Notes under the pieces: model-generated
What the model was told of the DNA's origin: nothing
Database searches by the model: none
What the model saw: only the letters and a program-made list of their open reading frames with translations
Assembly: GCA_023515725.1 (NCBI GenBank)
Contig: JALDTO010000070.1
Location: forward strand, 1-47,479
Direction: 5' to 3'
Length of the DNA: 47,479 nucleotides
Source: Amoeboaphelidium protococcarum X5
Lineage: Eukaryota > Fungi > Aphelidiomycota
Position numbers and translations under genes: made by a program
In this document: positions 1 to 47,479 of the stretch, one piece after another
How positions within the stretch are numbered: the stretch's first letter is position 1
How the letters are laid out: the number at the start of each line of letters is the position of its first letter

Positions 1-326
1 ATGCTGCTCCTGAGTACTTTGAGTAGCTTGCGTTGCCTGAGCAGTTGCATCCAGCGCGCGATGTGTATGCTGCATCTATCGTATTGAACGAGATTTACTC
101 CTAATGTCACGCGTGGTAAAGCTGCAGTCTACTACAAATTAAACAATTTGTTTTGATGGGTCAAAGACCGGAGACTCGCAGATTGCAATACGTGAATGCC
201 CATGCTCCTGCTTTGGAGACTGTTATTTAATCTGGATGGGCATAAAATCCAGCTGATCGCGCTACTGCAGCGCAGATGGTGAAATAGTTGGAGCCTTTGT
301 TGGCAACAGAAATGATTTAAAACTGA
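1..326 (+). CDS. Protein kinase, C-terminal part (subdomains VIII-XI, TKL-like); 5' end lies outside the window
   Basis: Frame from nt 3 with TAR=Gln reads AAPEYFEQL...ARDVYAASIVLNEIYS...GQRP...IQSGWAQNPADRATAAQMV...IQN and ends TGA at 324-326. APE, DVY and W..P..R are kinase C-lobe motifs. Confidence 0.8.
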
Positions 327-749
327 ATTGAGCAGTACGCTGAAGATTAATGAATTGGGAATTTGGCAATAAATAAGTTGAATGATTTCCATGCATTGAA
401 GAATAGTTTAAAAATTTAAAATGAACTACTGTTGTAAACACTTTATTTGTGTCTTAGATGAGTCTCGACTGTTTGGAACAGTTTTGACTAAAGCTTCACA
501 TACAGTGCAATTTAGCAGAGAAACTTGTCTTATTGCCTTCCAAGTATATTGTACCTATCTATCATCAATTACCAGTGGGGACATTAATGAACAATATTGT
601 TATCAATGGAGGTTGTCACATCTCAGAGTGTCAAGACACTTGATTCAAACGAAAGTTTGTTGATTATCTGTCCCTTTATCCCACTCTTTACTTCTGTATT
701 TTGTAAGTAAATTTCAATCAACTGCATTGAATAATATAGAACTGTAATT

Positions 750-2195
750 ATGTTCACCAGCTCTAGAAAAGACTACAGAAAATGCTAGTCTTACAAGTCA
801 AAGTAGGCGATGGAGAGTGAAATGAGGCAACTGATAAATGGCCTATACGACGATCGAAAGGCTATTCCAATTACAAGTTTTCTCAAACAAGATATCGAAT
901 CTAATATTAATCCAAGAAACTACTTACTAAATTCACTAGACATAAGAGTATGGTAGTTACCAGAAGGTGAAATTATGGATACAGGTGATTAGAATGAGTG
1001 TTAGATCGAAAGTGGAGTGGAATCTACGCAGGATAGATTTGTTTCAGCCCTCAGCCACAATGATGAAACGCTGTCTGTCACTGCTAAATTCAGGAGTTTA
1101 TACAATTCTGTGGCTGGAAGCTTTGGATTATATAAGGCTTAAAGTAAATAGAAGCGGAAAACGATATTTGATGTATTCAATATATCTACTTCTGGAGATT
1201 TAGAGTCAGATAGTCAACATATGGGCTCTTAAAGGAAATCCTAAGTGCCTCACGCAATCGCCAGACATCAGAATACCATCTCACTGTGGGGATCAGAGCT
1301 CTCATTGATTAATCACTAGTTTGGTGCACTGATTAAAATCTAGTAGTACCAGCTAACTGTGCCATAATTTGTGGTTACTCTTTGTAAATACGTAACGATT
1401 ACGCGAGTGAATGGATATGTGTGCTCAGAATTCATCTTACTGGATAACCACCAGTAGCATGACATAAATTTTGTCAAGACTTATTTTGAACTCAATCCCA
1501 TGGCGACAGTTGATAACATTTAGTAAATGTAGAATATATCTCCTTCTCTAGCAATGTACACACTCTTCAACTGGGTCGGATGCATCAGCGGTGGAATTGT
1601 TCCGGTTGGTTGTCACTTTCTGCTTTTAACTGTAGTCGAGTTGTACCTGACAAGTTACTATGGATGTTAACTTCGGTTTAACTAAAAAGTGGCGTTGAAA
1701 TATTCATTATAAACCGTAAATAATTCAACTAGTTCAGTGGATTCGTTGATCTCTAACTAACAACTGATAAGTCAATTCGATGCGTACCCCAAGCGATCTA
1801 TGCCGCTTGTTCAACGGCCTATGTCTTTGATTATTAATTGCATTAGATCCTCAATTGCTCTCATTCCACAAGATTAGAGAGACTTGCTGTTGTACTTGAT
1901 TTAGTGGGCTCGTGAATTTGTTGCCATTAGCTGTAGCGTTTCATCCAACGACGTTGCAGGTGACGCGTCGTATCTTGCCATGTGCTGCAAATTGTGTGAT
2001 CAGTTGTCTTCCTTCATAGCTAAAGGTATGGAGAGGCAACTGAGATCCTCTGTACAAGAGTATAGAAGAGCTAGAACACTGAGTTTGCGCGCATATGAAC
2101 CTGTGCCTGAAGCTTTGCATACGATGGAACAATGTTCATCCCAGGCGCTCATAAAGTTGTGGCTTTTCTTGACTTTCATATATCTTTATGATTGA
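750..2195 (+). CDS. Hypothetical 481-aa protein with a degenerate RhoGAP-like domain
   Basis: One ATG..TGA frame with TAR=Gln that includes track ORF 1980-2195. LWGSEL, VPQFVVTLCKYV, LAMYTLFNWVGCISGGIVP and IALIPQDQRDLLLYLIQWAREF follow RhoGAP helix order, but no EGIFR-type Arg finger is visible. Confidence 0.6.
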
Positions 2196-2682
2196 GAATA
2201 TGTATGAACGCTATTAGATGAACAATAATTTAGTAGGCTACTTGTTGCTTGTTGAAATTACGTAAGAGTTTCAGAGTGTTTTCATAAGATTGCGTATTGC
2301 GTGCCTTAATCACTACCATGAATTAACAGTACCCTGTGCTAAAATAATCTGAATCTCCACTCTTTTAGTAGCAAAGTATAAGTTATTTTATGCGGCGTAT
2401 TGCCTGTTGTATTCGTAGTCTTGTCATCTTAATGGCCGTTTCTAGTGATTGGTTGATGCTACTATTTAGGATTCTGAAAATTCCATTTAACAATTGATAT
2501 TTTCTGCTTCACTCCTTAAATCGTTTTATCATCTCAGTTCTTGTCTTTATTGTTGTTATATTCGATAAAACGCGCGCTAGCCTCCGATGCAGTAAAGCGT
2601 TGTTTATTGCACATGGACTCAATTGCAACGCCTATGAGCGTGTCAATTTCACAGTAAATGAAGTAATTAGAATTCAAAAGTT

Positions 2683-3579
2683 TCATTTATCAGAGTTCAT
2701 GTTATCATCCTCCTGCGCGCTTACATCGACTAAGGATATCACCTACTCGTTAATCTTATCAAACTGGCACAAAACTTCAACTTTGAATCCAACCAAGCAA
2801 CCATCGCTGTACTGGACATTAAGAAGCTTAAGGACACGAGCCATCTCCACTTTCACCTCTTATCCCTGCTTGCACACCTCAAAGTCTCGCATAACATGCA
2901 CCTATCCTTTATCTAACGACGTTGGAATGTTTCCATAATGAGGAGTACGCAACAGCTGAGCCATAGATGCAGGGAGAGGAAGTCTATGAACATCACGCTC
3001 CATCATCTCATCATCTCCACCATTAACAGCCGCAGAATCTCCAGTCTTTTACAAGTCTGTCAACAGTGGATAGTACATAACTCCAGCTGGAATAGTATAT
3101 GAAAACGGAGCCGGTACACCAGCGCGTACATAATCATCTTCTTGCAGATTATCAAAATATTGCTTAACCTGTTCAGAGTTCGAATCGGTGAAAAGCAGAA
3201 ACAATTACGCGTTCATTCGGCCAACATTCTTCTATGCCGAGAATTGCTCAATAGCAGAAGACATATCAGCGCCAAAGTCGATATCCTGAGCGGTATTAAA
3301 CGCGACCTTCATAATAGCATGCTTTCCAAATACAATCTTTCCATGTAGCTGGCCCGCAGTATCATTATCATCACCACCAGTACTGATAGATGATTTGAGT
3401 TGATCACGCAAATTCTTCAAAAATTGATTTCTTGCATTGAAAGTGCGCATCAAGTAAACATTCTTATAATGAGCCAAATTGTCTTGGATATTTTGTATTA
3501 GAGCAGACTTTTTCTCCTGCGCTGGCTTCTTCTGCACCTTGGTCAAGTTGACAATCTTGGCACGCTTAGATTTAGGCAT
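2683..3579 (-). CDS. MRT4: Ribosome assembly factor Mrt4 (uL10 paralog), 298 aa
   Basis: Starts MPKSKRAKIVNLTKVQKK. Contains RNQFLKNLR, IVFGKHAIMKVAF, LLFTD, DYVRAG, IPTSLDKGQV and FEVCKQGQ..MARVLKLL. Reads through TAG/TAA to TGA at 2685-2683. Confidence 0.93.
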
Positions 3580-3939: not shown

Positions 3940-5544
3940 ATGTCAATGCAGAATTTGTATTAATATAAAAAGTAGCAGAAATTGCGAGGGAATTCTCTGA
4001 GACATCGAGTTAGAGTCGCTGCGTGGAATAGAATCTAATCAGAGTTGTCTGCGATTAATTAGCTCTAGAAGAGATGGCGTGGACCATTTTTGGATTTTAT
4101 ATGTGCTGTTGTTCTGACAGCTATGGGTACACATACCGCTTTTCTTGTTGGACTCCCGCTACTATTTCTGTTCTATGACAATGGTGGATTGCATGATGAA
4201 TTCTATTTCGCTCGCCATATGACCATCATCTGTGGATTGTGTGTGGCGTTTACTGGTGTCCTGAAAGATTATCTTTGCCTGCCTAGACCACCCGCTCTGG
4301 ATGACATTAAACATAGTGGAGATGGGCCGAATGTAAACTCTTTAATCTTCAGGATGAAAGATCGGCTTGTTACGCGTCTGCTGCATACGAAAGGATCTTA
4401 TCACACTCAAGAATATGGTGCGCCATCTACGCATGCGTGTAATAGTACAGCGATTGTCACTTTTATCATGTTGCATCATTATATACTGCCACTGTATGAA
4501 GGGCGACTGGATCAGTTTTCGAATGGAGACATGATCTTCATTGCACTGCTGATGGTTTATGCTATGGCTCTTCCATTATCTCGTGTCTACTGCGGGATGC
4601 ATTCATTTACTGATGTTCAGGTGGGCGGTGCGCTGGGAATGTCTATAACTATGGGGTGGTAGTTCATTGCGATCAATTATCTGAATATTGATCAATTTGT
4701 GATTAATTCTCCTCCTATGGTTGTATTGGGTGCATCGTTGATCATATATTATATCTGTTTCGTGCATATGCATCCATCACCGATGAAAAAGTGTCCGTGC
4801 TATGCTGATACAGTGTCTAATTGTGCGGTTATCGCTGGTGTGTTGTATGGTACATCAGATTTTGGCTTGACCGCTAGAATGAATGATTTCAAGTATGGTG
4901 CATCCATCCCTTTTGTATTCGATTGGTAGCGATGGTATTTGCCACTTACTTTTATGGGCTTAGGTGCTGATAATGATGGAGGCTATATACCAATGCTGTC
5001 AGTGTGGGGTATCTGTTTGAGGGCAATCTTGATGATGTCTTTGCTCTTGTTATGGCGCTTGGTGGCCAAGGCTTTCTTTAATGCTCTACTCACTCCCGTA
5101 TATGCCATTATGCATTCCTACTACGGAGAGGGTCATTTGGATAGTTGGATGAGTTCCGGTCTTTCTGAAGCAGTCGCTTGTGAAGATTAGTCTTGTACTA
5201 CGGATCATGCCGAGGATCCGTTGCACTCCTCCCGCTATAGTCATAACAGCGTAGGGGATATGGTGCTTCAAGATGGGAATGATTCTGGTGTGAGTGTATC
5301 TTCATCCCTATCCGAGTATTGCCTTAGTAATGAACCTATGTAAGAATCGCCGTAACATCAAGACGATCTTACTCTCATAATCCAGGATATTTTGAGTCTT
5401 GAATACTATGATGGAAAGTATGGGATGGAGTTCTCATTTAACAAGCTGTCTCTTGATATGACGGTGAAGTTTATAGTTTACTTTGGAATTGGTATGTTGG
5501 CTGTAGACCATATACCTCGTTTGATTTTGTATTTAAAGTTGTGA
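3940..5544 (+). CDS. LCB3: Sphingoid long-chain base phosphate phosphatase (PAP2 family, Lcb3/Ysr3/SGPP type), 534 aa
   Basis: Motifs C1 KDYLCLPRP, C2 EYGAPSTH and C3 SRVYCGMHSFTD, multiple TM segments, and C-terminal KFIVYFGIG. Track ORFs 4090, 4699 and 4939 share one frame joined by TAG. TGA at 5542-5544. Confidence 0.9.
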
Positions 5545-5908: not shown

Positions 5909-7162
5909 ATGCTTGGAAAGCCGTAGTACAAAAGTGGAGATCAAACAGTATTTGTTCGTGTAAATGTTGATGTCGATAGTTATGTTAGTGAAAGTGATGA
6001 TGAATCTCAAGTCTCTGTGGAATCTCTTGACGTTGGGGTGGAGTTAGTCGATGATATTAACGCGCTGATGAGGGCCAAGTTTCTGGCTAATAAAGCTTGT
6101 CTTGATCAATTAGTTCGTACATGGGAGTTTCTAGATTCTGATTAATAAATGTCTGCTGGTATTAAAATAGTAAAAGCCCCCACTGCATCTAAAATCTAAC
6201 ATGTCGTTTTAAATCCGTATCTTTATCGAGGATTGCAACCGATTAACTCTCTCAATAATTTGGCCTCGTTGGTTGGCGCGCCCATAGATTGGTATTAGAT
6301 TTATGAGCTAAAAGTGGCCAGTGATCACTTGGTGAAGCGTTTGTATCGAAAATTGGTTAGTCTAGATGAGAATGTTAGTGAAAATGATATTTAAAACGCG
6401 TTCGAAAGCCTGGTTATTAGAATTGGGACTTGTCTCGGTATCTCAGTGTAGTACTCCCAGTAGAAGTCATACATAGTCGGTGGCATTCTGGCAAATTCCG
6501 AATATGACATCCGTGGAAGACTTGATTCCGTTTTCAACGGTTGGTCTGGCAACTCTTTGCTCGCCACAGAGTGCAAGAGAGCTTCTGCATTTTTACCGGA
6601 CAAAATGTGGCATCATGGTTCTCGAGGCGTTTAAACTTTGTCCACATTATTTGTCACTGGATGTCCCACTATCCTATATTCTTAGAAAGCCTTCAAAATC
6701 TTTTTGGAGAATGATAGTCGTGATACAATTTATACTTGGACTACCAGTTGTTTTAATGAGTCCTCTGATAATAGTGTCCCTTATTCTAGGGAGATGATTG
6801 CTTCGTCATATGGCATTGAGAATATGACTAGCGTCATACTTTAAGTTATCTCAATGTGTTTGCTCGCTTGTGGGCGTGATGATCTTGACTCATCCGTAGT
6901 TGAAGCTGAAGAGCTGATGACTACTGAAGAGTCCTCCTTTGCTAAGTGTTCTGACGTGCTGCTCTCTGGTTAATAGGTAGGCAAAGCAAGCGCAGAAGGC
7001 CGGAGCGGTGCTTAAAAAGTGGCGCGCTCCTAGATATTAAAGATTATATAGCCCCAATTCATGTCTGGCTTTGTTAATGGGACGCCGAGTTATATCGCCG
7101 TACGCATTGCTCCTGATGACTTGGTGAATAAGATCGAGACTTTGACTTAAAAATCTGCTTGA
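5909..7162 (+). CDS. Hypothetical 417-aa protein, candidate PD-(D/E)xK restriction-endonuclease-like fold
   Basis: Continuous ATG..TGA frame with TAR=Gln, absent from the ORF track. Motif order is SENDIQNAF (helix 1 E), GRLDSVF (D), LLATECKR (ExK), then RGVQTL. Confidence 0.65.
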
Positions 7163-7628: not shown

Positions 7629-10600
7629 TCAATCTTATTATTGCTATTGTGGTGCAGCATCTAATTGGTTACCAACAGCTTAAGGGATCTACTGGAGTAT
7701 ACCATCATCATCGCTACCGTTAGATACAGCAGAAGTAGAAGATGAAGATAAAGTGGAGGTTCTAGCCATTTGCCTCCGTTCACTTTCGCTCAAATCTTAC
7801 AATTACTTTCCAACCAGAAATGCATCATCATACGCCTTATCAATAACACCATCCAAGGATTAACTCAGTATATCTGATGCAAAGTAAAATAATACTACCA
7901 GCTAAATGAGAGGATAAATCATTGTGGATGCAGCAATTTCAATCAACGGCTACAATTCCGAGTTATGTAAATAAAGTTCTATGATTGCACTAGGAAGCAT
8001 GAATCGAATCTTTGATACAATAAAGCGAACAAACACCAAGTTGGTAAAAGGAAGAGCAATCAGAGCCACAGCACTCAAAATGTATAATGAGCAGATCAGG
8101 TGAACATCTTTGATGGATACATCTCTCAATTTACCGTTCCACAATTGATGAATAATCAATTAAATCTTGAACAATAGCACGGAGTAGAGTCTAACAGCAA
8201 GCCTCTGACACCGAACAAAATAAGGTGAAGTTCTAGCGTTATCATCATCACGTGGGAGTGGCATCAGAGGAGCAGGTGGAATTCTGGCCAAACGCTAAAC
8301 ATTGCCCAGATTCAACTGACCGATGAACAGAATAACTGTCGATGTAAATATAAAGCCAATACTCAACGCATCGAATATTGGGAATATTTCGTATCTGTAG
8401 ACAAAGCCAGCGCTGAATCGAGTCTCTGGTTGAGATGTGGCATTAACAAATTATGGACTGAGCTTACGCGGATCAGAACCAGCATTTTATAGTGATAGAG
8501 CCAGATATACAATATCCAATATGGGGCGAATAACAACTAAAACCACAAGCATAGCATCCAAAAAGGACAATATACAGTACCATCCAATTAAATAAGCCGC
8601 CTTCATCATGACGATGCCTTAACTGACAAATTGTCTCATTGACAACCAGAATGCGCTGGATAAATACTAATTGTACAGCATGATCCAACTCAATCTAATC
8701 TTGTCCAAAAGAGATAGGCTTAACCGGCTGCTATTAGCACTTACCAATCTTATCTCTTCTCCGGATACGTTGTTCTGCAGCTAACGAAACTTTATCAATA
8801 GGAGCAAGTCAATAACCTTTGTAGATAGCAATGCTCCAATCTTGAAATACTCTTAAATCGCAGTGACCAAGGTGTAGTTGGACTCAAATTGACGCGTAAT
8901 GTCTGCCTTCATGTCATTTACCTCCTCGTCAAGGACATCAACCCCATACAAAGTACGGACCTTCTAAATAATCCGCTAGTCTACAGCATGAGATAGCACT
9001 TCAAGAGCTTTCCAAGGCATGTAGAAATAATCGCGCATAAACTAAACTGCTCTTTGGACAAATTTCAACACCAAGAGTAATAAAATGAATCCTATAGTGA
9101 ACGCATACCAGTCATGCAACATTGGTGGATTTTCGGTACTGGTAGAAATATTTTCAACAATGTTATAATACGCTCCAATAGAAGTTAAGCAGTCATGCAC
9201 TTTTAAGGCCATTTATCTACCCATGAGAATTGGAATGTAAAAGAACAGAGCTTAAACGCAGACCATCAGAGCCCACACGCCAAATGCAAACATGTGCATT
9301 CTAATTCGAAATTTCCTTGGCTTAAAGACTATAGCGGTAAGCAGTTCCTACGTATTAGTTTTAGGTATGATTCCAAACATTGTGGTATTGATACCAGGCA
9401 CATTCAGGTATCTGTTCATAAGCAACTTGTGTGTAAAGTACACGAATCGAGGATCCATCACCGACTGATACAGATCAAGAGTATATTGTCTATTCTCAGT
9501 CAAATTGGACTCTGCCGAAGAAGCTGGTATCATAAACGGATCCCTCCAGTGAGAAAACGGACTAACGATAGATCTAAGCAGTGACCTCCTCATTGGATGT
9601 TCAGTAATATCGACGCCTCCATGCTCAGTAGACGTTATAAAGGAGATTGATCGCACCTCAGGTGGAAATTACAAATCTTGCCCGAAAGCCTTCTTCACTT
9701 CAGCCAACGATGACAAATCATCCTATGCAATAACTCTGACAAGACCATGGTAATCTAGCTCATCCATTTTGTAGGATCTGACATTCTGCAAACAGATCTT
9801 TTCATCTTTATTGATAGATATTTCATGAGGATTCTATGCATTGGATGTGGAATGAGATTCCATACGGGAAGAATCTAAAGATATATCATCTTCAGGCCAG
9901 ATACCGCCATACAAGAATGATCGAAGCTTTAATGAAGACGCTAGATAGAATAAACATTATCTCCATGCCATAGTGAATGCATTAATCAAATTCGATCGCT
10001 TTATGGCAAAGGGGAAGAGCATATGGATGCAAAAGAACTCATAGACAGACACAACAGGCAATCCAAAACGCAAATCTAGACGCAGTGGAATAATTGATGG
10101 CTGAGTAAGCGATGCTGCTTTCAGAGCCTTCTCCAAGCACGCGGCCATATCTGATGGCTGCAAGGTACTTACATAAGTCCATAAGAATTACACCACGTTA
10201 ACCCAGTGCTCAATTAACAGCAGAGAGAAGGACGGGATGCCAAACACGCTGAATATGATCAGAAAGTACATCCACAAACTGAGAAATATTCTTTACATCT
10301 ACCTACCAAATGGCTTCTCCAGAATCTCTGTAATAGGATTAAAATCATTATTAGACGTACTTGGATCCTTAATAAACCATAACAGTCCCGGTCTAAAGCA
10401 CTTTCGCAAGTACGACGTGAAGTAGGCAAAAGAGAACATGTACATTGTGCCGGCAAACCAGTGCAGAAATAGAGAACTTTTTTAATGCGACTAATGGAAT
10501 TCCGAGAAGGTGAGGAAGCCATGGTAAACACACGTCAGAACAGGCGCAATTAGCATGATTAAAAAGTTACCGTTCTCCACCAGCCCTTTCAAAAACTTAC

Positions 10601-12476
10601 CATTTTAGTCCGCACCGTACAGCAGAGGCATCGCGCAGATATGCACAAACACGCCACAGGCTAATGGAAATATCACCAGTTCCAACAATAAGATAATGAC
10701 AATTTTAATGGATAGAAGAGAAAAGTTTAGAATCCTTTTCACTCTTCTCTATATTGATAGAATATACGACATGACATCACCTTCCAACTAACGAGAGTCA
10801 TCAAGCAGGCGCAAAGGTACAAGCAATATCTTTATGTGCTCAGTGGAAAGCATTAAGAGCGCAACACAGGCAGCCATCATAGTCAAGTACCCCAGGCCAA
10901 TTGTAGGCAAGATATTCACGGCAAAGTCAATGACCGCAGGTGAAAGGATTTGTAAATCCTAAACTGATTAATTGCCATTTTTAGTTGACAACTCGCCCAA
11001 CTCCGACAGTGTTGAATTGTTATTTCGAACAAAATTTGCTTCAATAGCTGCCACCATCTATACCGGAGAGAATAAATTCACGCTTCCAAACATGCTCAAA
11101 AACTACTTGCTCAAAACGCCAACACTGTACGGAATTTTGAGAAATGCAGTTATGAATATAAACATGAACAGCACCAGATACGTAGCATTAATCAAAAGGC
11201 CTGCAATAGGACCACGGAATCCTAGGAGATCTAACAATCCCAAATCTCCTATGTCTACATCATCCAGATCATTATTGACGCCAATGTTTTATCTACCTGC
11301 ATTTTAAAAGGCTGGTTCTTGATCAACTGCAGGCTGATGATCTTCAGGCTCTAAATCAGGAATTCGCGGAAGCTCTTCAACTTCGTTCATAGGCATAACT
11401 GCGGCTTACCCTTCCTCAACTGGTACATCAGCATCAGCATCTTACCATGGCGCTTAATCATTATAAAACTATACAAACTCATCAAGACGCACGACATCAG
11501 GCTAACCATGATCCCTGTCTTATTCAAACGGCCACTACTACTAGTCTTATGAATTGGTATCAACGCCATCCAGCTCCTGGTTATTAAATTTGTAAGCACT
11601 ATCGTTAAGTCTATCCTCTAACTGATTAGAACTAACAGAACTTGAACTTGCCTAACCGATACTATGAGTAAAATCCCTTTCAATATTCAGACTCGCATCA
11701 CTCTGATCAGTCAATTGCTCAAGCAACTCCTACTGCAAATTTTATCCGACAATGACATTCAATCCCAACTTCTCATTGAGTTTAATAATCATAAGCTCAA
11801 ACTAATCCCGCGTGAACCATTCAAAACGCGTCTAATCAATCTATCTCAGAAATACCATTTAGTTAAACTAATCATGCAGCAACATCACCATCAAACATAT
11901 TCCAGCCAGGCAAATACCAATAAGCAAACCTTCAATAATACGATTCAGTAAACTGTATCCATCCAATTTCGTGAAAGTATCACTCAAGATCGACGACAAC
12001 AGTCGACGCGATGACGAATAATTATAAAACTCACTGAAAGCCGACAAAATTCTACTAAATGCACCAGTGATAGATCCACCCGACTCAAATGACGCACCGC
12101 CATCATTAAGCTTGAAACAGAAATGCAAAATCGAAGACGCGCACAATGGAACGATTACGCCCCAAACAATGACAACAAACGCGCTCCTACAGCCATACGC
12201 AATAGTAGACATGAGATTGCCGACCAATCGAGCAACCACCAGTACAAGCATTTTGTGAACAGGAACTTCCTTAATCTGATCATCCGGTACAGAATAGACA
12301 TTCTTAAACTTGAATACATGGCCACACAGCTCACACTTTGATTTATTAGACCGCTGTAGCCACTCCAATAGACACTACTCATGCACGTACTAGATACTAC
12401 CGGAACACAGGCAAGGCTATCTCAAAGGATTATCATCCGTCCCTTCACACCTACAGACTCTACATATAACTTCCAT
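7629..12476 (-). CDS. DOA10: ERAD E3 ubiquitin ligase Doa10/MARCH6, about 1615 aa
   Basis: N-terminal [43 protein letters not shown]...CELC. Many TM segments and a C-terminal IDKAYDDAFLVGKQL element. Track fragments ending 12368, 10163, 9656 and 8159 share the frame. TGA at 7631-7629. Confidence 0.92.
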
Positions 12477-12888: not shown

Positions 12889-13566
12889 ATGGGAGATAAT
12901 ATTATGGCTTATAACGGTGGAAGTGTCGTCGCAATGGTTGGCAAGACACATGTTGCTATTGCTTCAGACAAGAGATTCGGTGTGTAGGCAATGACTCTGA
13001 GCACGGAGAACCCTAAAGTTTACTCTATGCATGAGCGTCTGTTCATCGCACTGAGTGGGCTGAGCACTGATGTTATGACGTTGAGTTAGATGTTGAAGAT
13101 GCGCTGCCAGTTGTACTCATTGGCTGAGGAAGGGCGTAAAATTGCACCGGTCGCCTTCAGTCATCTAGTGAGTAGCACGCTGTACGAGAAGAGATTCAGT
13201 CCGTACTATGCTGAGCCAGTCATTGCAGGACTGCAGCCAGTGATTGACGAAAAGTCATCTAATGATAAGTCGTCGTCGAAGTAGCAGAAGACAAAGTTGA
13301 AGCCATTCATCTGTAGTACTGACTTGATTGGGTGCATCAACTTTGCAAAGGATTTCGTCGTGGCTGGAACATCTTCTCACCAACTATACGGTACTTGTGA
13401 AGCACTGTGGGAGCCTGACATGTCCAAGGATGAGTTGTCTGAATGTATTAGCCAGGCTCTGTTGTCTGCCATGGACAGAGATGCTGTCAGTGGATGGGGT
13501 GCTGTGGTGTACCTGATTGGTGAAGAAGGTGTCACTGTCAGACACTTGAAGGGAAGAATGGATTGA
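12889..13566 (+). CDS. PUP3: 20S proteasome subunit beta3, 225 aa
   Basis: [61 protein letters not shown] and C-terminal LKGRMD. Three in-frame TAG read as Gln. Ends TGA. Confidence 0.96.
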
Positions 13567-13568
13567 TC

Positions 13569-20500: not shown

Positions 20501-20656
20501 CTCAAGAATGACATGTCCAAGTTGAAGAAGACTGTTCGAAAGCACATGGATCAAATGTCACAGAACTACCTGGCCAGTGTGAAGAATAGAGAGCGTGATA
20601 TATTATTTCTCCGAAACGAGATCAAGCATCTACTCTAATATAGATCAGAATAATGA
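14546..20656 (+). CDS. Dbl-family RhoGEF: SH3-SH3-DH-PH plus about 1000 aa of coiled coil, about 2036 aa
   Basis: SH3-1 KAVKSF...DELSLSVGDLI...GFFPADCV. SH3-2 FPYEAQKSDELELKMGD...GGWWRG...GWFPANFV. DH RQQVIWELFITEGAYVRDL...LSSYLIKPVQRICKYPLFL. PH IFLFNDMVLIAK...KANWIQ. Then heptad-rich E/K/Q/L sequence to TGA at 20654-20656. Start codon uncertain. Confidence 0.88.
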
Positions 20657-34200: not shown

Positions 34201-37200
34201 AACAGAGTCGAACTCTTTCCACTTCCAGGTAAGCCACATAATATAACAACAGAGGATTCTCCAACCAACTACTATATCAAATTCTCGTTGCGCACAGTAT
34301 CCAAAGTGTCTATAAATATTTCAGAAGATAGATCCCTCAGAACCATCTCATTAGAATCATTAACTTGATAAGGTACCCAGTTTCCGCTAGCAATGTCAAC
34401 AGTATAGTCAATGACATTAGCAGTTATATCGATAGTCGATATAGATGCCAAATAGTCAACCAATTTGAGCTGATCTTGGCGCGAACAATCGCCAGCAACA
34501 GAATATACAATATTTAAAACCAGCTTCCTCTGTAAAAATATCAGCATCAATTGTTGGTCCAACTTCCCATCAACAAAGGTCGATTAATGACGCTCAATGG
34601 ACTCCAAATCGGCAATGATAAACTTGCTCAAAGTCTTCAAACTTCTACTGACAGAAAACTTCATAACATGCTTAAGCGATCTTCCATAATCCAAAGCCTT
34701 ACTAACAAGACCTCCATTTACAAAGAATGGCTTCAATATACTATGAAACTGAACTTAGAGCTCCTTAAATGCGGCTTCAGCGGTGAGTAATCTACCTGGA
34801 GACGCAAAGAGGCAGCCTCGCGACAGTTTCAGCAATATAGACTCAATAATCATATCAGTATCCACGTTGGACGCGTCAAAATAGACAATACCACATCTAC
34901 TCACGGTGGCCATTGTGGCATACTTCATGCTATCAACTTCAAATACCAACTTAACATTAGAAGGAAAAGTGAGCCTCTCTCCATTCGGTAGACTAAGCAG
35001 TTTGTTATCATCCAGAACGCTATTTAAATTTTCAATCCATTCAGTATCCAGATCGCCATCAAAGACAATGAAATACAAAAGCTTCGGATTCTTCAATGCC
35101 GACTATACTAAGCTTCTAGCAATTGAAGTAAACATACCATCGGTCCACTCTCTCGTCACAGAATCCAGCTTTCCGTACAATGCCTCCTTCGATACAGCTT
35201 TCGGATCGATGACTTTTACGTCACCGAGTTCACTCTTAACCTTCAAGCATTCACAGAAAACTTGGAATGCACAGGATTTACCAGAACCCGAATCACCAGA
35301 TAGTATAATACCGTTATTAATTGACACGACACTAGCGATATGCATAACTTTATCTAGAAACTACGGAGACTTACATAGATGCAACCTATCAATAGACTGT
35401 TCACAGAGCGCAGAAAATTCAGCATCCAACACTCCGCCATCTGAATCTTTAAAGAAACATAAGAGTAATTTTTGAAATTTGGATAAGTCATCTGATACCA
35501 GCTTCGGCAGGATTGCCTTCTTTATACCCTGCTGAAGAAGTTGAAATCCATCAAGTTAAGCTTACGAGCCAGTTGCCAATGAAGCCAAATTCAAATTACC
35601 AACTACTGATAAAACGCCCTTCATAGCACGCAAGCCAAAATCATAATGCGGCTGGGAAGACATCAGCTACTAGCAGACGCTAAATAATGACACTAATTTA
35701 CGAGCTAACGTGTGTCCATCGCTAACGATACCTTAGGAGAACAGCAATATCTCCACAATCTGAACCACATCAGGCTTAGTTAACGCCATTGGTCTGAAAA
35801 GACGCCTCAAATTGTCCGGTAACTGATTGCGACCAATATAAGCCGGATTCATGGTAACAAATATTCCAGTGTTTTTCTAGATACTAATAGACTTTTAAGC
35901 AATCTTTACTTGAGATGAACTTGACAACAACGCCTCTTAAATGTTCTAAATCTGGTGTGATAGAGAAGACAATATATGCTCGTCCAGTCTGTTAAACTCA
36001 TCAAAGCAGCCCCATGCACCTACCTAACACAATCCGGACAATATTCTACTCATAGATTTGTAGTCAAATGAATCGTCGCAGCAAAACACAACCACCGGAA
36101 GCCCAAGATCGTAGCCCAGAGCTTTAACCGTCTCAGTTTTACCAGTACCAGCCTAGCCGTAAATATTACCACCCAAATGTTGATGCAAAGCAGACAGTAA
36201 GTTAAGCTAACAACGCTAGGTAGTAGGCGTTTAAACAATCTTCTGGCAAACACCCAGGTACTCAAAATTGTAGTTAAATTACATATCCATGCATTTGATT
36301 GTGATCTTACGGAAATCTGAATCTGCCTTGTACTCCATTATTGCTCTGCAGATTACACTATCGCTCTTGCCCTCATCTTAAAAAGCTGACACCAAATTAC
36401 GCCAATAACTCAACTCTACCAGCATATTTCTAAACTTTAATCTGAGCACAGATACTTTTACTTCTAGAACTTTAGATGCCAATCCATTAATCAACTGATT
36501 GATTACACTTGCTGCCTTTGAGAGATTAGCCTTATTCTCAATCAAGCGTGTGAGATGTAACTTAACGCTGACTAAACACGCTTGGAAAGGATAATCCGAT
36601 AGCCATTATTACCAGTCAAAATCAGTGTAATCTTTAGCAGTAGAGAAACTTTCAAGAGATGCCTTCAATAATACTTCAAGAGCAGAAATTAACTGCGCTT
36701 CCAAAGACTTCAACAAGTCAACAACTGCCAAACCTTGAACTATAAGCGGCGTAGAAAATAGAAGCACCTCACCCTCTGGACTTTGAACACCAGTAAGAGT
36801 AATCTTCTCAGCTCCATCTTGCACAATGAATTAACCAACACCGAAAAACAGCTTATTAACATACTTGCCTAAAATCTGAAGATCCCCACCACAGCCCATA
36901 ATCTCAAGCAAATCGTCATCCCCAACAAAATAGAATCTAGGATATTGATCCCTCTATTTCGTCAAAAAATCTGACAATGAGCGCTTAATCTTTTGCAACT
37001 GTACCAGAAATCTATCGACGGTAGATTGAATCAAAGGAATCTGCACCATTGATAATACTTGAGGCGAAGCTACAATCTGCTTCACAAGAGATGAGAAGTC
37101 ATTTACCACGCTGCTAAACTTGATAAACTCATTCGGCAGTACCATCTTCAAATCTGAAGAGTTGGTAAATAAACCATTCATGTATATGAATTATGACTAG

Positions 37201-40200
37201 AACTCGGAGTAAATAGAGAACAGCGCATTGACTTCATTCAGTTTCTATTCCCACTGAACGACTTCAGTCTCAAAATGCTTATAGAAAGGGGAATGCTTCA
37301 TTGACACCAGGCCATTAATACTCTCCACAGACTATTCTATAACTTGATCATAGTTCCTGATAATACGCACATTAGACCGATGTAGAATGAGATCTACCGT
37401 CATATTCTCCCACTTTTCAATCACATCACGCAAGTATTCCTCTATTCCCATCTCTCCAATAGCATCATTGATTACATTCTTCACTGGCTACGTGGCAAAC
37501 GATTACAGATATCCAAGAACAGAGCCTAAATGCAAATCAGCATCACCCCCAGAATGATTCCAAACAGTAAATAAACGCTTCCAGTGCCTCTCTTTCATAT
37601 AATTCGACTTGAGCTCAATAATGAACTTGTGCAGCTACATCGTAACATCAATTCTTTTGGCAAGAGCATCAAAAGCGGCATAATGCTTAATAGCTGGCGG
37701 CATGTCTCCTAACATAGCTTTCACGTTCAACAGAGCCTTCTTGACAGAATCAGGCGTAACTTAAGACCATAAACTTGACATGATCTGATCAAACTGCTTC
37801 TACAAAGGAGCAATGGAAGACCAAACATTTTTAAGATCATTCAGCTCTTCAATGGCAGATTAAAATTGACTATCAGACATAACTTCAAGTCCAACTGATG
37901 ACCGAGCCTAATTGAGAGTAAAGATTTCAGTATTCAGAGAATTAAACTTCTGCTCAACATCATTCAACACAGCTTAAGCATCAGAATATTGCAAAGAGCC
38001 ATCTATTGGCTTACTCGAGCCCCACTGCGTAACCACTCTAGATACCTTCTCTCTAATGACTTTATCTTGAACAGTCAACTTACTCTAGATGACACTCAAA
38101 TTGTCTGCCAAACTTTGATTTTTAGATTCATAGATACTGACAAGCATAGAATACTCTCCCTTCAAACGTTCATATTCAACCTGAGGACGACGACCATTGG
38201 CTTTGCCTAATTTGAAAGATTATTAAAACATATCAAGTCGTTCCTCTGACAACTTCACCTCATCCTTACACTGATTCAGTAGAGACACCAATTAAATCAT
38301 CTCCTGCACAGAAGCACTATCAAAGGAAGGACATTGTTCAATTTGATATCGTATACCAGCAGTGTCTTGCAAAAAATTATTGGCCTTGGATTCGTACAGC
38401 TCAATGAATTTAATCAAAAAGGCAGAAATCAGCTCACTGAATCTTTCAACAAGAGCATTCTTCGCACCAGCTGTCGTTAAACGAATGATACCGCTCACAA
38501 ATTCACGAGGTAAAGAGGAACACCTTTTCTTTTCACCAATGAGTAGAGTCATGTATTACAACCATCCACCAAGATTATCGCCGAGAGTCTCCGCCACAAC
38601 GCCGTCATCGCAGTCCCACAAACTCTGATATACAATGACAGAGCCCATAGCAATTTGACACCGCTCCATTGAGGTGGCAAAAGCTTTCCACAAATCATCA
38701 ATCAAGTGGGACTGAACTTCGCCTATTAGATGAGAATAATCAGTTATGGTCTCGATCAAAGGACTTAATGAGAAAATCACGTTAAGTTTATCACTGATTA
38801 ACTATACGACGACCTGCATAATACCGCTAAAGTCCATAGTAGAGCTAATCTTTTTCAGCCTGCAACGGATATCAACAGCAATAGGATCAATAGATAAAAA
38901 ACTTCGGGACAAATCGCCAGGCAGCTCTGTCCCACTTAAAACAGCGCCCAAGTACTAAATTATCTGCTCCATCTTGAGAACTAAAGCTCTTTCAACTGAA
39001 GTATTAACATGATTAAGCCAAGGCGCAATGGAAGATTAAGCGGACATTCTAACAGAATCGACTATAGCTTGAATTTATCCCATAAGACTCGGAATCTTGC
39101 TCTCCAAATCATCTCTGCATTTCTCTATAGCCTTAATAGCCTGAGCGATAGCATCATGTTTATTCTAATAGAACTCCACCTTATTTTACAAGTTACCAAC
39201 ACCGTCACTGATATCCTCAACAAACTGGCCATATTTCCCGCTGCGTCCATCAGTTGCAGGCAACGTCAAGTACTCCCAACGATATTCAATGCCTTGCTGC
39301 AGCAATGATTAGATGAGTTAAATCTCTTTAGTCACCAAAACTCCCAGATTGCCTCCAGCTTAACTCACAGTGTGCAAACTAGATGTAAAAGATGACAATG
39401 CCGCTTACAAGTTCACAGCATAAGGGTAAATCAGTCTACAATCTTTGGCCGCACTGACAACAGAATGAGGCACAGAGAAGCCCATCGCCACGAAATTCTA
39501 AACATCTTTGTACATTGACAATTTGGCCACGTTAATATTCAATACAAGCGACAGAGTATCGGTGCTGCGATCTTTGACAATTTTGAACAAACTTGATCCA
39601 AATCCATAATCGGCATTCTACACTTTTTGAAGCCAGTTATCATACAACTACTAAGTGCCGAGCTTAGAGCGAAAATTCTAAATCTCCTCATTCAACTTCT
39701 AGCCATCAGCATACGTCTCCCAGCCTTGTCCAAAGACACTCTCAATTTTTTTCACATACAAATTTAACTATCTCTCCAGCTGCTTAACCCACATCACTTC
39801 ACCACTGGCCAGAGGTGCTTGTCTTAGACGCTCATAATAATAAGTTTCGCTCTTTGTATAACCAGCCAAAAACTTGTCAAGCAGACGATGGATATCCAAC
39901 TTGACACTTCCAATCAGCTGCACCTGGTAATCCTTAATCGCAGCACGTACTTTCTGTCTCACAAAGAGAGTGTTGTACTTGCTGAATAGTCTAAACATCT
40001 CATTTGAATTCTTACATTGATCCAACTTATTCTTCAAATCCTCAATTAGCTCATATTCAATCTTGTCAACCTACTCCATATAAAGCTTCTCGTTAGCATT
40101 CCATTATTGTGTCCCTTCATCTGAAATGTCACAAATGTCCAAAGTCTTGATTAATCGATAAGCTTCCCCAAGATCTTGAACGGTAATGGCAGACTCAGAC

Positions 40201-41615
40201 TAGTATATTTTCTCCAGAGTTTCCGCCAGCAAATGATGATTAGTTCTGAACTGTAGAATGTAATCAAGACGATCCTTTAAACTCTCATGCTACGCATTCA
40301 CCTTCACTGGAATAAACTTTTCACCGCGTCGACGAATTAAATCTCTGGCAGCAGTCACAAACTCTCTACACTACTCATCCCACACAGTGAAAATCTGGTC
40401 AAACAGAAAATCCATATTTTATTTGAATGCAGAAAACGGCATATTCATCAACTTGAGATTGGTTACAATCTTCACTACCAAGTCATTAAAGTCATTGGCT
40501 ATGACATCCACCAGCTGTAATGCACGAGCCACCGGGTAACCACTGAGCTTCAACTTCTTAATCAAGTGGGAGAATATCAATATGACTCCATCACGCAGCT
40601 TCTCCATACTGTCGGCATTCATCATTTCAGCAGCAGGAAAATCTTTCAGCAGTACATTATACTTTTACGCCTGATCAAGACAAGCCTGTAGCCCAGTATC
40701 CTGGATAAAACCGATAGTGGCATGGAATCTTTTGGCCTATTTCAATAGATCCATCACCAATAAAACTTCATCATTTTACAGTTGCTTCTCAATATCCAAG
40801 AGTTCCCGCTCTAACTGCTGCCAGAAATTCACCTCTTAGAGAGCATTAACAACAGCAGAATCTCTAACCAGCTTAGTGACTGTCTAAATATCGATGACCC
40901 ATTAATTAACATCGCTTTATAGTTGATTAATGAAAGTCTAATCCGTGGCTACATCTGCAAAGCCTTCCACCTGAATCTTTTGTCCACTTTATCTGCACTT
41001 CTGCACGTACTCCACTACTCTAACACTACTAACCTTCAACTAGACATGTGGAATATCAACATTCTATTACAGATTGAGCAAAGCATTAGCCAACTCGGCC
41101 AACTTACGCCTCGCCAAATTGACGGCATTATCACCTTTACTATTCGCAGTTGAACGAGACATTACGGCCGACTTGTTGGCAGACACATCCGAACCAGACA
41201 CCTGCTGCCCGGCAAACGCCTACAATAATGGACTCAATGCGTTCACCACAGTACCGTGCAATGAGCCAAACAAAGAAGCCTAGTCCAACATTGGCACATA
41301 GAAAGATGATAGCTGACTAACCAGTGGCTAAGAAGGATCCAAGTCAGCTAAGCCATTCAACTTGTTCACGCAGAGAACGCCTTAACACTTACCCAGACTC
41401 TAAGTCAACTCGGACTAAAACAGCAGAGTCGCACTCTCACTAGCATCCCCACTATGAACTCTCAGCAGGTAAAGAGTAGACACACTACCACTGCAGAAAC
41501 TCTAAAACAACTTACCATTATCAGGCAAGTTCAACGCCAACTGTAACAATTTAAGATCACACTCCATTAAACTTGGCACAGCATTCTCCAAATATTCTCT
41601 CAATTTACCCTCCAT
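28257..41615 (-). CDS. DYN1: Cytoplasmic dynein 1 heavy chain, about 4452 aa, apparently intronless
   Basis: Tail [21 protein letters not shown]1 [29 protein letters not shown]2 [30 protein letters not shown]3 [24 protein letters not shown]4 [16 protein letters not shown], stalk [11 protein letters not shown]. More than 15 track fragments share one frame. TGA at 28259-28257. Confidence 0.96.
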
Positions 41616-42047: not shown

Positions 42048-45000
42048 ATGGAGTTTGAAATTGATGATGATTTACTGCTGTGTGCATTGGATAATATTGA
42101 GAATGTGGTTGACACTGGGCCTAATATAACTACTAATCTGATGGATAATCATCAACTATGGCAAGGTTAGTAGACAACAACCGCATCATCCTCATCTAGT
42201 TGCATTGTAAAGTCTTCTACTAGTAATACCAAGATTCGAGATAATAAGCAGACTACTCTGTTTGATAACAATTTTTCACTGAAGCACGTTCCTGATAATA
42301 ACGGTAATAATAATGTCAACTTCTCAAGACCGTCTAGTATCGCTAGTTTGCGCGTAAACACTCAAAACTTCTCTGTTGAAACTCACCATGAGATTGATCA
42401 GGATGCTGTCAAGACATGGATTTATCCAAACAATTATCCTGTTAGGCAGTACTAGTTCAGTATTATCAAGAAGGCCCTGTTTGTCAATACCTTGGTCTGT
42501 CTACCCACTGGCCTTGGCAAGACTTTTATTGCCGCCGTGTTAATGTTCAACTACTATCGCTGGTTCCCAAAGAGTAAAATCTTCTTCTTGGCACCGACAA
42601 AGCCTTTGGTAGCGTAGTAGATCAAAGCTTGTTATCAGATTACTGGGATTCCTCAGCCTGATACGGTTGAGCTCACAGGGGCAATGCAACCGGCCACTAG
42701 AGCCAAGATGTATCAAGAGAGACGAGTCTTTTTCATGACACCTCAGTCTCTTAGTAATGATTTGAATTCTGGTATCTGTGATCCCAGATAGATTGTATGC
42801 CTCGTTATTGATGAAGCTCATAGAGCTACCGGGAATTATGCTTATTGTCAAGTTATTGAAAAGGTCTATCAGAGTCACAAGGCGTTTAGAATTCTTGCAC
42901 TATCTGCTACTCCTGGATCGCTGGTGGACTCTGTTCAAGTTATTGTTAACAATTGCAAAATTCATTAAATTGAGATTAGAACTGAAGAGTCCAAAGATAT
43001 AGTTTAGTACATCTATAATAAGCGGAAAGATGTAGTGGTGGTGAAACTTAGTCCTGATATCTGCAAAGTTCGCGATACGTTTAGTTAATAGATCTTATAG
43101 CCAGCTGTTAGTCGCTTGTTTAGAGCGGGCGCTATCTATCAGAAAGATGCCATGAATGTGGGCAAGTATTAGATACTAATGGCTAGATAGCGATTCAATA
43201 TGAATGGTAATCGTGGTAATGACCGTGATAAAAATCTTATTCGTCGAGACTTTACTGCGCTTATGACATTGTATCATGCATTTGAACTTTTGCCCAAGCA
43301 CGGAGTCTTATCATTCTACAAGTATCTGAAGGAGGTGTTGGCAGATAGTGGTGGACCAAAAAGTACTTCTGGTCCAGCCAAGTTGATGCTCATGAATAAT
43401 CCTCATTTCCGCGGTCTGATGAACTTCATGGAAGAGATAACTAACCGGCCCACTTTTGTTGGTCATCCGAAATTGGACGTGCTGGAGAGCCGGATGCTAT
43501 AGCATTTCATGGACAGTCAATGCTCCTCATCTGATAGTCAGTCCTCATCGGACCAATAATCTTCAGTCTCCACTCGTGCCATGGTATTTTGTGAGTATAG
43601 AGATGCCGTGGATGAGATTGTGGCTAGGCTTAATAAACATCAGCCCACAATCAAAGCTGTGTCTTTTATCGGACAATCGTCTAATAAATCTGTGAAAGGT
43701 TACACCTAGAAGCAGCAGTTGGAGGTCATTAAGAAATTTTAGAATGGTGAGTATAATGTCATTGTTGCTACCTGCATTGGAGAAGAAGGCCTAGATATCG
43801 GTGAGGTTGATCTGATTGTATGTTATGACACTTAATCGTCTCCAGTCAGAATGTTGTAGAGGATGGGAAGAACTGGTAGGAAGCGGGATGGCTCTATTCT
43901 GGTGCTATTGAGCGAAGGGAAGGAGGAGTATTAATACAAAGAAACTTAGAATTCTTACAAGAAGGTGTAGCAAGCTATCATGTCGCAGGACAAGTGTTTT
44001 ACAATGTGGCCACAGGAGTGCAGAGTTTTACCAAGTGCGGTCTCTCAGCCTGTATGTTCTGAACAGCTTCTCTCATTTGCATAATATGACGATAACTTTG
44101 CCAATTAGAAGCCGCTTTCTGACAAAAAGTAGCAGAGCAAAGCGAAATCGAAAAAAGTTGCCGTGAACTAAGATGCTATTTCATTAGAATTATCGGTAGA
44201 GAAGGTAAAATATGTAAAATCGAAGACTAATACTGGAAAGAAAAGTAAAGCAACCAAGTAAAGTGGTAAAGAGAAGTCTAATGTTCCCACGCCTGATTTG
44301 CCTGAAACTACTGCTCCTAATACTGCTCGATAAAAGGTGCAGTTTGTTAATCTGATATCTGACGATGATGAAGATGAAGATTTCGCTAAGAATGAGTAAA
44401 AAGTCATTGAATCTGGTGTTAAGGTAATCTCAGCCGAACCGATACCTATGGTTCCTCAAGTCCTTGAAGATACAGTTCCCGCTGAGAAAGAATGTCAAGA
44501 GATTCTTCTTTAAGGACCTGCTATAGTAAAAGACTATTCCTCACTTTACCATACCTTGCCTCAGCATGAACCTACTTCAAACTGCCATCATTAAGCATCT
44601 TGCCCAGCCAGTGACTAGTCTGACTTAAAGTTGGCGATCGAAAATGCCGTCATCGGAATCTCCTATGCTCGTACTGATTCACTAGTTGTAATCCCTAAAA
44701 AGTCTTAAAGTTATGATAGTAATCCAATGGTATCAGTTTAGTAATCTGAGAATTAAACAGTTTAAGACTTTAATGCATCGCCAGATAGGAGATAGTCTCA
44801 TGTTAGGACAAAGCCCAAAGAGACTAGAAAAATTACTGCTAAGAGAACCTTTGTCTTTGACGAGGCTGACTTGACTGATGCCGAAGATACTGATGAAGAA
44901 GTGAATTACGGCAGTCGTAAAAGAGTGAGGAATACCAGTGAAGATGAAGATGAGGATAAGCTGGATGAAATGCTGGCTTAGGATCTTGAATTGGTTGATT

Positions 45001-45584
45001 TTGTCGTTGAAGATCATGATCAGAGTGAAGTATCCGCATAAGAACAATCACATCTCGGTGTGTTTTCGCATCATCATGGTCAGTACAGAATGAAGTTTAA
45101 CGACGATATCTCATTGTCACAAAAGTATGTACATCAGAAGCCCGTGCTTAAGGAAGGAGCGAGTGACTATGACTTGGGCTCATTTGTAGTCGGCGATGAT
45201 GACGATGATGATGATATTATCGACATTGTTGATGATGACACTAGTGGTGAAATAGTGGATGTTCATGATTTGTTTGAAAGTCCTCAGATTCCTCGTCATA
45301 AAGCCGTTAATAATAGGTTGAACTAGAAGAAGCGGAGAATAATATCCTCAAGTGTGGCCAACACTCCCGTGTCTGGTAAGATTTCAATATCCAACTCTAT
45401 GATCAGTTAGAAAGTTATAGTTGAAGAGCCTGCAGAAGTCTTAAATGATTTGAACGTGATTGATTTGTTGGAAGGTGTAGATCTAAGCCTACTAGACTAA
45501 ATTTAAAATTAATAATTCATCATCAAAAATTGCTTAGTTTTATTGTCATTATTCATTAAAAAGCAGTTACGCATTACATAATGA
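42048..45584 (+). CDS. MPH1: FANCM/Mph1 DEAH helicase-translocase, about 1178 aa, no ERCC4 domain visible
   Basis: [80 protein letters not shown] and [18 protein letters not shown]. First in-frame TGA is at 45582-45584, but the exact C-terminus is uncertain (see findings). Confidence 0.93.
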
Positions 45585-45590
45585 CCATCA

Positions 45591-46634
45591 TCACTTTGGA
45601 CAAGGGACCATGGTGGCTTCACCATACAGATTGTAGCCAAACTTCTGTCTGAAATCGAGCCATTCCTGAGGCAAGCTGTCAGTCTGCAGATCAAGATGCA
45701 TATTACTTTCAACACCATTCACGTCAGAAGCTCCGTCATCGAAGCCACACCATTGATTCTGGTCACTGCACTCATCGCCAATGACAACGAGCAGTGTGCC
45801 CAGCTTCTCCAAGTGTGGAGTCAAGTCAGGCAAAATCTGCGGCTTACCATAATTGCCCGGTTGGTAGTTATCCTAATTGATGCGACCCAGTGGAGTGTAC
45901 TCCCAACAAGTATTAGCGTAATTCTTCTTGTAATAGTTATTTCCAGTAGCTGCCACGGTCATACCATTGATCTTGCCACTTTTGAAGCCACAATCAGTGT
46001 AAAGCACTTCACCGCTCTCTGGCTGATGAGTGTACCAAGTCTGAGAAGTCTTGACCTTGTTAGTCTCAGCTGGGAGAGGCTCCAGGTAGCATTACTCATT
46101 ACCGATCCAATGAACATTGTCAGAGTCGGTAGGCGTCGCGTGAGCAGTCTTGCCCCAAGCACCAGGTGGATAAGACATAAGACCGCCGGGACCATAAGCT
46201 GGCTTATTAGTAGTTGGAGCAGGAGCGGATGGATTGGCACCTTTTCCTGGCGATGGAGCGGTTGCATTACCACCATACGCAGGAGTATTAGATCCAGCAG
46301 GAGCAGGCGATGGACCGCCACCATAAGCAGGAGCATTGGATCCAGCAGGAGCAGGAGAAGGACTTCCACCATAGGCTGGCGCTATAGCTGGAGCAGGCGA
46401 TGGGCCTTTACCATATGCAGGCGCGTTTGCTGGAGCGGGTGATGGACTTCCACCATATGATGGCGCATTAGCAGAAGGAGAAGGACTACCACCAGCTTAA
46501 TAACCAGGAGCATCGCAAGCAGGTGCATGAACATAAACAATTTCACAACCATCAGCATCATAATCAACGGCATTGATCGCGCTCATACTGACAAGCAGAG
46601 ACGCGCACAGGGAGGCAATTTTACGATACTACAT
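45591..46634 (-). CDS. Secreted 347-aa protein: signal peptide, Pro/Ala/Gly/Tyr repeats, GH45/expansin-like double-psi beta-barrel domain
   Basis: MQYRKIASLCASLLVSMSAINA (codon 2 is TAG), repeated APAYGGxPSPAP units, then TWY..DCG..VAATG..C..VVIGDEC..NQWC..MHLDL..VPCPK. TGA at 45593-45591. Confidence 0.75.
46190..46497 (-). repeat. Coding tandem repeat, about 6 degenerate units of (N)APAYGG(S/G)PSPAP(AGS)
   Basis: Recurrent CCACCATA and GGAGCAGG strings on the + strand at roughly 39-45 nt spacing. Confidence 0.85.
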
Positions 46635-47479
46635 TTTTTAATAAATATTCTATTTTATATAAACGTGACTAAGACTATATAATTATATATAAACGACTAT
46701 GTGTTTAAAATAAAGAAGAAATACCAGGTAGTCATTCATCCCAAGTTTATCAGATCTCATGATACCACTTGATGTTACACTAAAGTTGTGACAGCCATTA
46801 AGATTGCGTAACGAAGCACCTGTGATCCCAGTCATGTAACATTACGCGATAAGCTACAACATTGCCGTATGTAACGCGTGACCGCTTTGATAAATGCAGA
46901 CTATAGAGATGATGACATCGTAAAGTAAGCGATAAAATTATGATAATATAAAGCAAGGCGACTAACGCCGTCTGATTAAAAAAGCACAGTCAATATCCTT
47001 ATCAAATAATCACATAGATTCTAGACACGAATTTCATTTCGATGTAAATACAAATCTACCTTGGGCTGCTTACACCAAAATATTCATTGAGATTGATTGG
47101 ACGAGGGTTCGGTTACTTACATTAATCCGGTTTTATAACCAATCAGAAAAGCAATCTCATCACAGCGACACTTGGTTGCATCACTTATCCTTCACTTCTA
47201 CGCAATTTCTTCATTAGATACTATCAAAAAAGGGCCGATCTCTCGTTCGTGCACTTCAAAGTTTTTTTGAAAATTTTCTGTAGTAGATCACAAGATGATG
47301 GTTCGCTTGTTTCACAACTATTTTGAAATGATTTGTAGCGTTGCAGTATAAATGGTATCCATTGAAACTGGTCTTAAATCGAGATATTATCTCTGAACCC
47401 GTGTCTTTCCTTTAACTAGTAACTCACCTTGTTTGATTATTACTCTGCTAAATATGAAGGTTAAAGTCTCATTGATTGA

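Follow-up and report, generated by a model that had tools for sequence, protein, structure and literature searches.

The contig JALDTO010000070.1 of the aphelid Amoeboaphelidium protococcarum X5 (assembly GCA_023515725.1) raises the question of how TAA and TAG are read in nuclear genes that are full of them, and of which codon ends translation there. The window analyzed is the whole contig, positions 1..47479 (47,479 nt), part of the nuclear assembly, with 40.3% GC and 14 almost intron-free coding sequences (CDSs) when TAA and TAG (collectively TAR, where R is a purine) are translated as glutamine. Comparative sequence evidence confirms that both TAA and TAG encode Gln in these genes, because four independent lines agree: profile decoding, codon swaps between duplicated genes, the presence of cognate tRNAs, and protein matches that reach 100% only under code 6 of the National Center for Biotechnology Information (NCBI), as the first-pass annotation of this DNA had proposed. 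In what follows the codon meaning is dealt with first, followed by the decoding machinery and termination, and finally the relationship to other variant codes.

With TGA as the sole stop, the window contains open frames of 4453, 2070, 1843, 1661, and 1187 codons, whereas the longest open frame under the standard code is 285 codons; in base-shuffled windows (n=200) the longest TGA-free run averages 449 codons and has a maximum of 698. Within 11 of the CDSs the Gln family is made up of 240 TAA, 312 TAG, 187 CAA, and 258 CAG codons, such that TAR represents 552/997 (55%). The six TAR sites that had originally been singled out are all found in the motifs quoted for them: the TAG at 16244 in the RhoGEF gene, TAA 26447 and TAG 26780 in REV3, the TAG of GLC[TAG]V (36026-36024) in the dynein heavy chain, and TAG TAG 42615-42620 together with TAG 43857 in the FANCM helicase gene. 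Poly-Q runs mix TAA, TAG, and CAR, including a 7-residue run at 14224. The description of the GLC[TAG]V site as family-invariant was too strong, as its column is Gln in just 36 of about 75 homologues.

The dynein heavy chain gene (28257..41615, minus strand; 4,452 codons, 165 TAR) was the subject of a profile decoding test. A stop-free piece was used to gather 150 relatives, of which 104 were aligned to the window dynein with its TAR codons masked, and Codetta-like log-odds were calculated for each codon. Gln is the best residue for TAA (log-odds 31.5, next Glu at 8.4; 68 sites) and for TAG (39.6, next Lys at 6.1; 92 sites), and as a control all 60 of the 60 sense codons present were decoded correctly. 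A Codetta-type check of the kind suggested at the outset therefore returns Gln for both codons. Among the 12 TAR columns with a consensus of at least 60%, nine are Gln and the others are Asp, Leu, and a Walker A Pro. At the TAG at 37197..37199 (minus strand) the column is Gln in 69/70 homologues; the TAG in the Walker A motif of AAA1 (36153..36155, minus strand) stands where 74/75 homologues have Pro, and is read as a Pro-to-Gln substitution.

The assembly comprises 23.65 Mb in 346 contigs and is largely duplicated, with homeologs that share 84-91% DNA identity. A published A. protococcarum assembly of unnamed strain (24.73 Mb, 258 scaffolds, GC 40.5%) is also described as largely duplicated (PMC10608142). 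The search for a homeolog of the window came up empty, and the TAR/CAR swap tests consequently made use of other loci. The stretches 20900-27900 and 33000-37000 of the window are single-copy in the otherwise duplicated assembly, their homeologs having been collapsed, homogenized, or lost. In homeologous CDSs TAR and CAR are exchanged at 44/335 sites (13.1%), which is comparable to the synonymous exchange of TTR and CTR (62/441, 14%; p=0.75). Non-synonymous first-position changes are much rarer, at 3/368 for TAY/CAY (p=5e-12 vs TAR/CAR) and 4/457 (0.9%) for TAR/GAR. The TAR/CAR figure becomes 87/665 in a larger set that contains two or three antisense shadows, and the two codons behave alike within it (TAA/CAA 29/241 and TAG/CAG 48/358, each 12-13%). 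In actin, residue 137, which we take to be Gln across the family, is TAG in one gene copy and CAR in two.

The identity of the organism is established, since the deposited protein MIR68_005212 (KAI3636945.1) matches the genome by tblastn with 100% identity under code 6, and lower under code 1. A stop-free ARP4 piece of the genome matches MP228_002389 of A. protococcarum at 98%, a protein whose cluster also includes MIR68_005212 and MIR68_003705. Accessions of the KAI363 series belong to strain X5 and those of the KAI365 series to strain FD95, according to PMC10057920. The species had been guessed correctly from the letters alone as A. protococcarum, and the accompanying suggestion that the code might represent a new instance falls away: TAA and TAG as Gln in this species is known from Karpov et al. 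2013 (Protist 164:195), as cited in PMC5304391, PMC6299283, and PMC11687900. Another A. protococcarum strain (GCA_023515745.1) uses the same code. The NCBI model of KAI3636945.1 joins ARP4 (about 430 amino acids) with an upstream gene to give a 1,555-amino-acid protein, and is likely an annotation error. Strains that are 97-99% alike were seen in biofilm, freshwater, and sediment metagenomes as well as in runs labeled as another organism, which are probably infected algal cultures; a Logan contig of run SRR845265 (L081) keeps 20 in-frame TAR codons and has one CAA/TAA swap.

The machinery needed to read TAR as Gln is present elsewhere in the genome, as the window itself contains zero tRNA genes. 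Of 1,171 tRNA candidates, 63 picked by model score were scored, and these include tRNA(CTA) and tRNA(TTA), with two genes each, on the homeologous contigs C158 and C200. A search for tRNAs with UUA and CUA anticodons, which the first-pass annotation had recommended, thus finds both kinds, and both are related to tRNA-Gln. They have 51-54 bases in common with the Gln tRNAs and no more than 46 with other tRNAs, and with the anticodons masked they form one clade with both Gln tRNAs (FastTree support 0.996). The tRNA-Gln(CTG) gene lies 0.6 kb from tRNA(CTA) on C200 and 6 kb from it on C158, with tRNA(TTA) 15-20 kb off. From this arrangement and kinship we infer that a tRNA-Gln gene was duplicated locally and gave rise to the suppressor tRNAs. 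The tRNA-Gln(CTG) and tRNA(CTA) genes are divergent neighbors (L080:5740-5814 and 6431-6504 on C200; L077:2956-3029 and 9026-9100 on C158), and the C158 locus contains a gag/pol frame resembling that of a long terminal repeat retrotransposon. A duplicated GlnRS serving the new tRNAs was considered and rejected, as GlnRS is represented by a single homeolog pair. In both suppressors the 27:43 pair is open, leaving a 4-bp anticodon stem that is not seen in the two canonical Gln tRNAs; four other nuclear tRNA genes are likewise open, and the feature, at 6/42 nuclear tRNA genes, was rejected as a peculiarity of the suppressors. A metagenome scan for the suppressor-tRNA core returned four unrelated prokaryote- or phage-like contigs. 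Genes for tRNA(CTA) were seen on two unrelated low-GC metagenome contigs (L107:6115-6187 and L109:4437-4511), whose genes are standard-looking or phage-like.

Rare substitutions in the N-terminal domain of eRF1, which had been put forward as something to look for, are found in both gene copies. They are T58A (shared by 0/47 homologues), S60V (0/48), R68K (0/55), L124M (5/120), and L126Q (0/120), along with the further changes Q79S and K130R. In ciliates, the residue at position 126 varies with the type of code (PMC4482090). A bias of this eRF1 towards UGA is plausible from its sequence. The eRF1 genes (L003/L004) favor TAG for Gln, with 2 TAA and 12 TAG in one copy and 0 and 16 in the other, as counted in frames downstream of the start Met.

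These components are consistent with a plain code of the ciliate type (NCBI table 6), with two tRNA-Gln-derived suppressors, a UGA-biased eRF1, and termination at UGA, and this is the explanation that we consider likely. Dedicated tRNAs with UUA and CUA anticodons, which stem from a locally duplicated tRNA-Gln gene and which the one GlnRS presumably charges, would read UAA and UAG as Gln. The eRF1 changes, which lie near the stop-reading motifs, would weaken recognition of UAR and so bias the factor to UGA, and translation would stop at UGA, in many cases backed up by a second UGA, and presumably never at UAA. A use of TGA for selenocysteine was rejected: SepSecS was searched for and not found, although its absence is not proven, and there is no sign of UGA as selenocysteine.

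Whether TGA really is the only stop is less straightforward. It had been claimed that all 14 CDSs end in TGA, and the 14 CDSs with an end in the window do reach a TGA, but this is true partly by construction, since the frames are TGA-defined, and the end of the FANCM gene is doubtful. The broader claim of TGA as the only stop draws its support from conserved C-termini that are followed by TGA, as in PUP3 within the window, and actin (three copies) and ARP4 outside it, and has to be qualified in the light of two observations. The first is an excess of TAA as the last codon ahead of the terminal TGA, found in 8/82 families against 1.2 expected. In an enlarged set the figure is 8/92 against a background of 2.1%, which is about fourfold (p ~8e-4 in a post-hoc test), and the excess is stable across three gene-calling thresholds; the other codons at this position number 1 for TAG, 3.5 for CAA, and 0 for CAG. 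Within the window TAA-TGA ends are seen in the RhoGEF gene (20651-20656) and the FANCM gene (45579-45584), and outside it in, for example, L078/L079 and L104/L105. The second is the FANCM frame itself (42048..45584, plus strand), where an acidic-hydrophobic end is followed by a stretch resembling an untranslated region (45498..45584). It consists of a TAA (45498-45500) and a tail of 84 nt with a GC of 0.20, which has four more TAA codons and finishes in TAA-TGA. This GC is below that of all 1,759 coding 84-nt windows of the contig, and 6 nt separate the TGA from the convergent gene's own stop, where the gaps of the other convergent pairs measure 151-487 nt. The tail is a candidate for either a TAA terminator or a recent stop loss.

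Both observations weigh against termination at UGA alone, as do several features of eRF1. Its stop-reading core is intact (GTS, E55, NIKS, S70, and YxCxxxF), in human eRF1 the S60V change proves neutral (PMC3632111), and yeast eRF1 L123Q confers a weak bias against UAR, with readthrough of 4.4/5.4/3.4% against 2.6/2.6/2.4% (PMC4482090 Table S3). The two observations and the intact core lend some weight to a dual meaning of UAA, as Gln inside genes and as a stop near the poly(A) tail, in the manner of Blastocrithidia, Condylostoma, and the karyorelict ciliates, with FANCM 45498-45500 as one case. We regard this as a tentative alternative and the less likely of the two, since the same observations can be generated under plain code 6. 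A backup TGA is enriched after the stop, at +1 in 6/92 and at +3 in 9/92 families, so that a single G-to-A transition can convert TGA-TGA into TAA-TGA and yield an equal excess, and a TGA-to-TAA stop loss accounts for FANCM. Depletion of a dual-meaning codon towards gene ends is a trait of such codes, but TAA is not depleted over the final 15-120 codons, whether in 35 genes or in 82 families, albeit in a small sample. Furthermore, none of around 20 aligned homeolog stop pairs exchanges TAA with TGA, and the terminal TAA interchanges with CAA and TAT between homeologs. The TAA-TGA excess and the FANCM tail hence fit either plain code 6 or UAA termination, with the balance leaning towards the plain code. 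A reading of TAA-TGA as a pure fossil stop was rejected, as old terminal Gln codons should equilibrate among TAA, TAG, CAA, and CAG, for which the observed values are 8/1/3.5/0.

It is very improbable that TAR is removed in RNA, by U-to-C editing or as tiny introns, or that the frames are pseudogenes, given that more than half of the Gln-family codons are TAR, that frames remain open across the length of the dynein gene, and that cognate tRNAs exist. Metatranscriptome contigs, which form weak evidence since they come from another, related strain and may derive from DNA, cover 18 dynein TAR codons with no joints and at most five editing-type changes. Weaker still, to the point of being scarcely credible, is the proposal that TAA and TAG differ in meaning or stand for Glu or some other amino acid, for which the second rank of Glu for TAA and the TAG codons at a near-invariant Pro and at a Leu column can be cited, but against which stand the separate Gln decoding of the two codons, their exchange with CAA and CAG at the synonymous rate while TAR/GAR stays at 0.9%, and the derivation of both suppressors from tRNA-Gln.

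The tRNA set also revealed a broader feature of this genome. Among 42 distinct nuclear tRNA gene sequences, 27 are mispaired only at 1:72, in comparison to 1/252 for pairs 2-7 (p=2e-26), and the selection by model score would if anything hide such mismatches. The U1 that faces C72 in the two suppressor tRNA genes was accordingly rejected as a peculiarity of the suppressors. Base 1 varies among near-identical copies of the Asn, Thr, Phe, Ala, Lys, and Ile tRNAs, with base 72 fixed, and all of the Phe, Trp, and Thr tRNA copies seen are mispaired at 1:72; in eukaryotes the G1-C72 pair counts among the listed identity elements of the Trp and Thr tRNAs (PMC9976931). This pattern is what 5' editing or repair of base 1 leaves in DNA, and it is probable that in two of every three nuclear tRNA genes this base has to be rewritten after transcription. 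The alternative is that an open first acceptor pair is tolerated. It bears some resemblance to mitochondrial 5' editing of the Thg1-like type in chytrids and amoebozoans, which shares mismatches at the start of the acceptor stem and a conserved 3' side (PMC4284800), but the A. protococcarum genes are nuclear, only the 1:72 pair is affected, and editing would be deduced from DNA. According to the same 2014 review, 5' editing of nuclear tRNAs is not known beyond the G-1 of tRNA-His, and if the 1:72 pair is edited the process would be of a kind unreported apart from that case. Separately, a mitochondrial-type tRNA cluster on C346 (26% GC; Trp-CCA, Gln, Asn, and Tyr; L012/L021) has mismatched acceptor pairs 1-3, like those of chytrid mitochondrial editing, and its Asn and Tyr tRNAs overlap.

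The genes of the window were searched as stop-free pieces, with spliced models compared exon by exon and unjoined, and the pieces match the families Ribosomal L10 (Mrt4), PAP2, RhoGEF, GH18, DNA polymerase B, and a helicase bundle. The contig begins with the 3' end of a protein-kinase-like CDS (3..326, plus strand), truncated by the contig start, which ends in TGA and is identified from a reading of its motifs only. It is followed by a 529-codon CDS with 25 TAR (606..2195, plus), whose longest piece has no Pfam match, an Mrt4/ribosomal L10-family CDS with 6 TAR (2683..3579, minus), a PAP2-family phosphatase CDS with 10 TAR (3940..5544, plus), and a 417-codon CDS with 17 TAR (5909..7162, plus), the pieces of which lack Pfam matches. 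An AT-rich direct repeat of 36 nt occurs in two intergenic gaps, at 5567-5602 and 7575-7610, with copies that are 92% alike. A Doa10/MARCH6-like RING-CH ligase CDS (7629..12476, minus) is named from its N-terminal RING-CH motif, with a start that is inferred. The proteasome beta3 gene PUP3 (12889..13566, plus) has its TGA directly after a family-type C-terminus, and beyond it lies a small acidic CDS (13819..14334, plus), which harbors the 7-residue Gln run. The SH3-DH RhoGEF CDS (14546..20656, plus), with the DH motif PV[TAG]RI, contains 121 TAR, the GH18 chitinase CDS (20999..22696, plus) 14, and the REV3 (Pol zeta) CDS (23129..28105, plus) 68, two of which are the codons in family motifs mentioned above. 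Convergent with the FANCM/Mph1 helicase CDS is a gene for a secreted-looking Pro/Ala/Gly repeat protein (45591..46634, minus), with five repeats of 42-48 nt and a weak C-terminal expansin-like match (EXPB1_D1; E 0.001, below the cut-off); a search for a homologue of its last 93 residues found none.

With respect to what was known, the code in the window is identical to that published for A. protococcarum and adds nothing new, the public assembly being already annotated with TAR as Gln. No description of its suppressor tRNAs, eRF1 changes, or TAA-TGA excess was found in the literature searched, a search to which two primary papers were external. No other report of a stop-to-Gln nuclear code in opisthokonts was found in that literature, and as the only such case found its tRNA and eRF1 machinery is of some use. 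If UAA does also terminate, it would be the first dual stop/sense codon in an opisthokont, alongside a dedicated UGA stop, and a fungal-side model for how the ribosome distinguishes UAA as a sense codon from UAA as a stop; some deposited proteins would then have false tails.

In comparison with the other users of NCBI table 6 (Tetrahymena, Paramecium, Stylonychia, Hexamita, Streblomastix, and the Ulvophyceae), A. protococcarum shares both the assignment of UAR to Gln and the tRNA-Gln-derived UUA and CUA tRNAs. Its eRF1, like theirs, is altered at positions 58-60 and 124-126, and L124M is part of the UGA-only QFM motif of Stylonychia (PMC3632111); the excess of backup UGA is found in ciliates as well (PMC6879139). 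At position 126, however, the usual change is L126F (PMC4482090), whereas A. protococcarum eRF1 has L126Q. Its code represents an independent origin in Holomycota, and Paraphelidium uses the standard code (PMC6299283). With the context-dependent codes of Blastocrithidia, Condylostoma, the karyorelictids, and Amoebophrya it would have in common a possible termination at UAA near the 3' end, but in contrast to these systems A. protococcarum keeps a dedicated UGA stop and shows no depletion of TAR before its gene ends.

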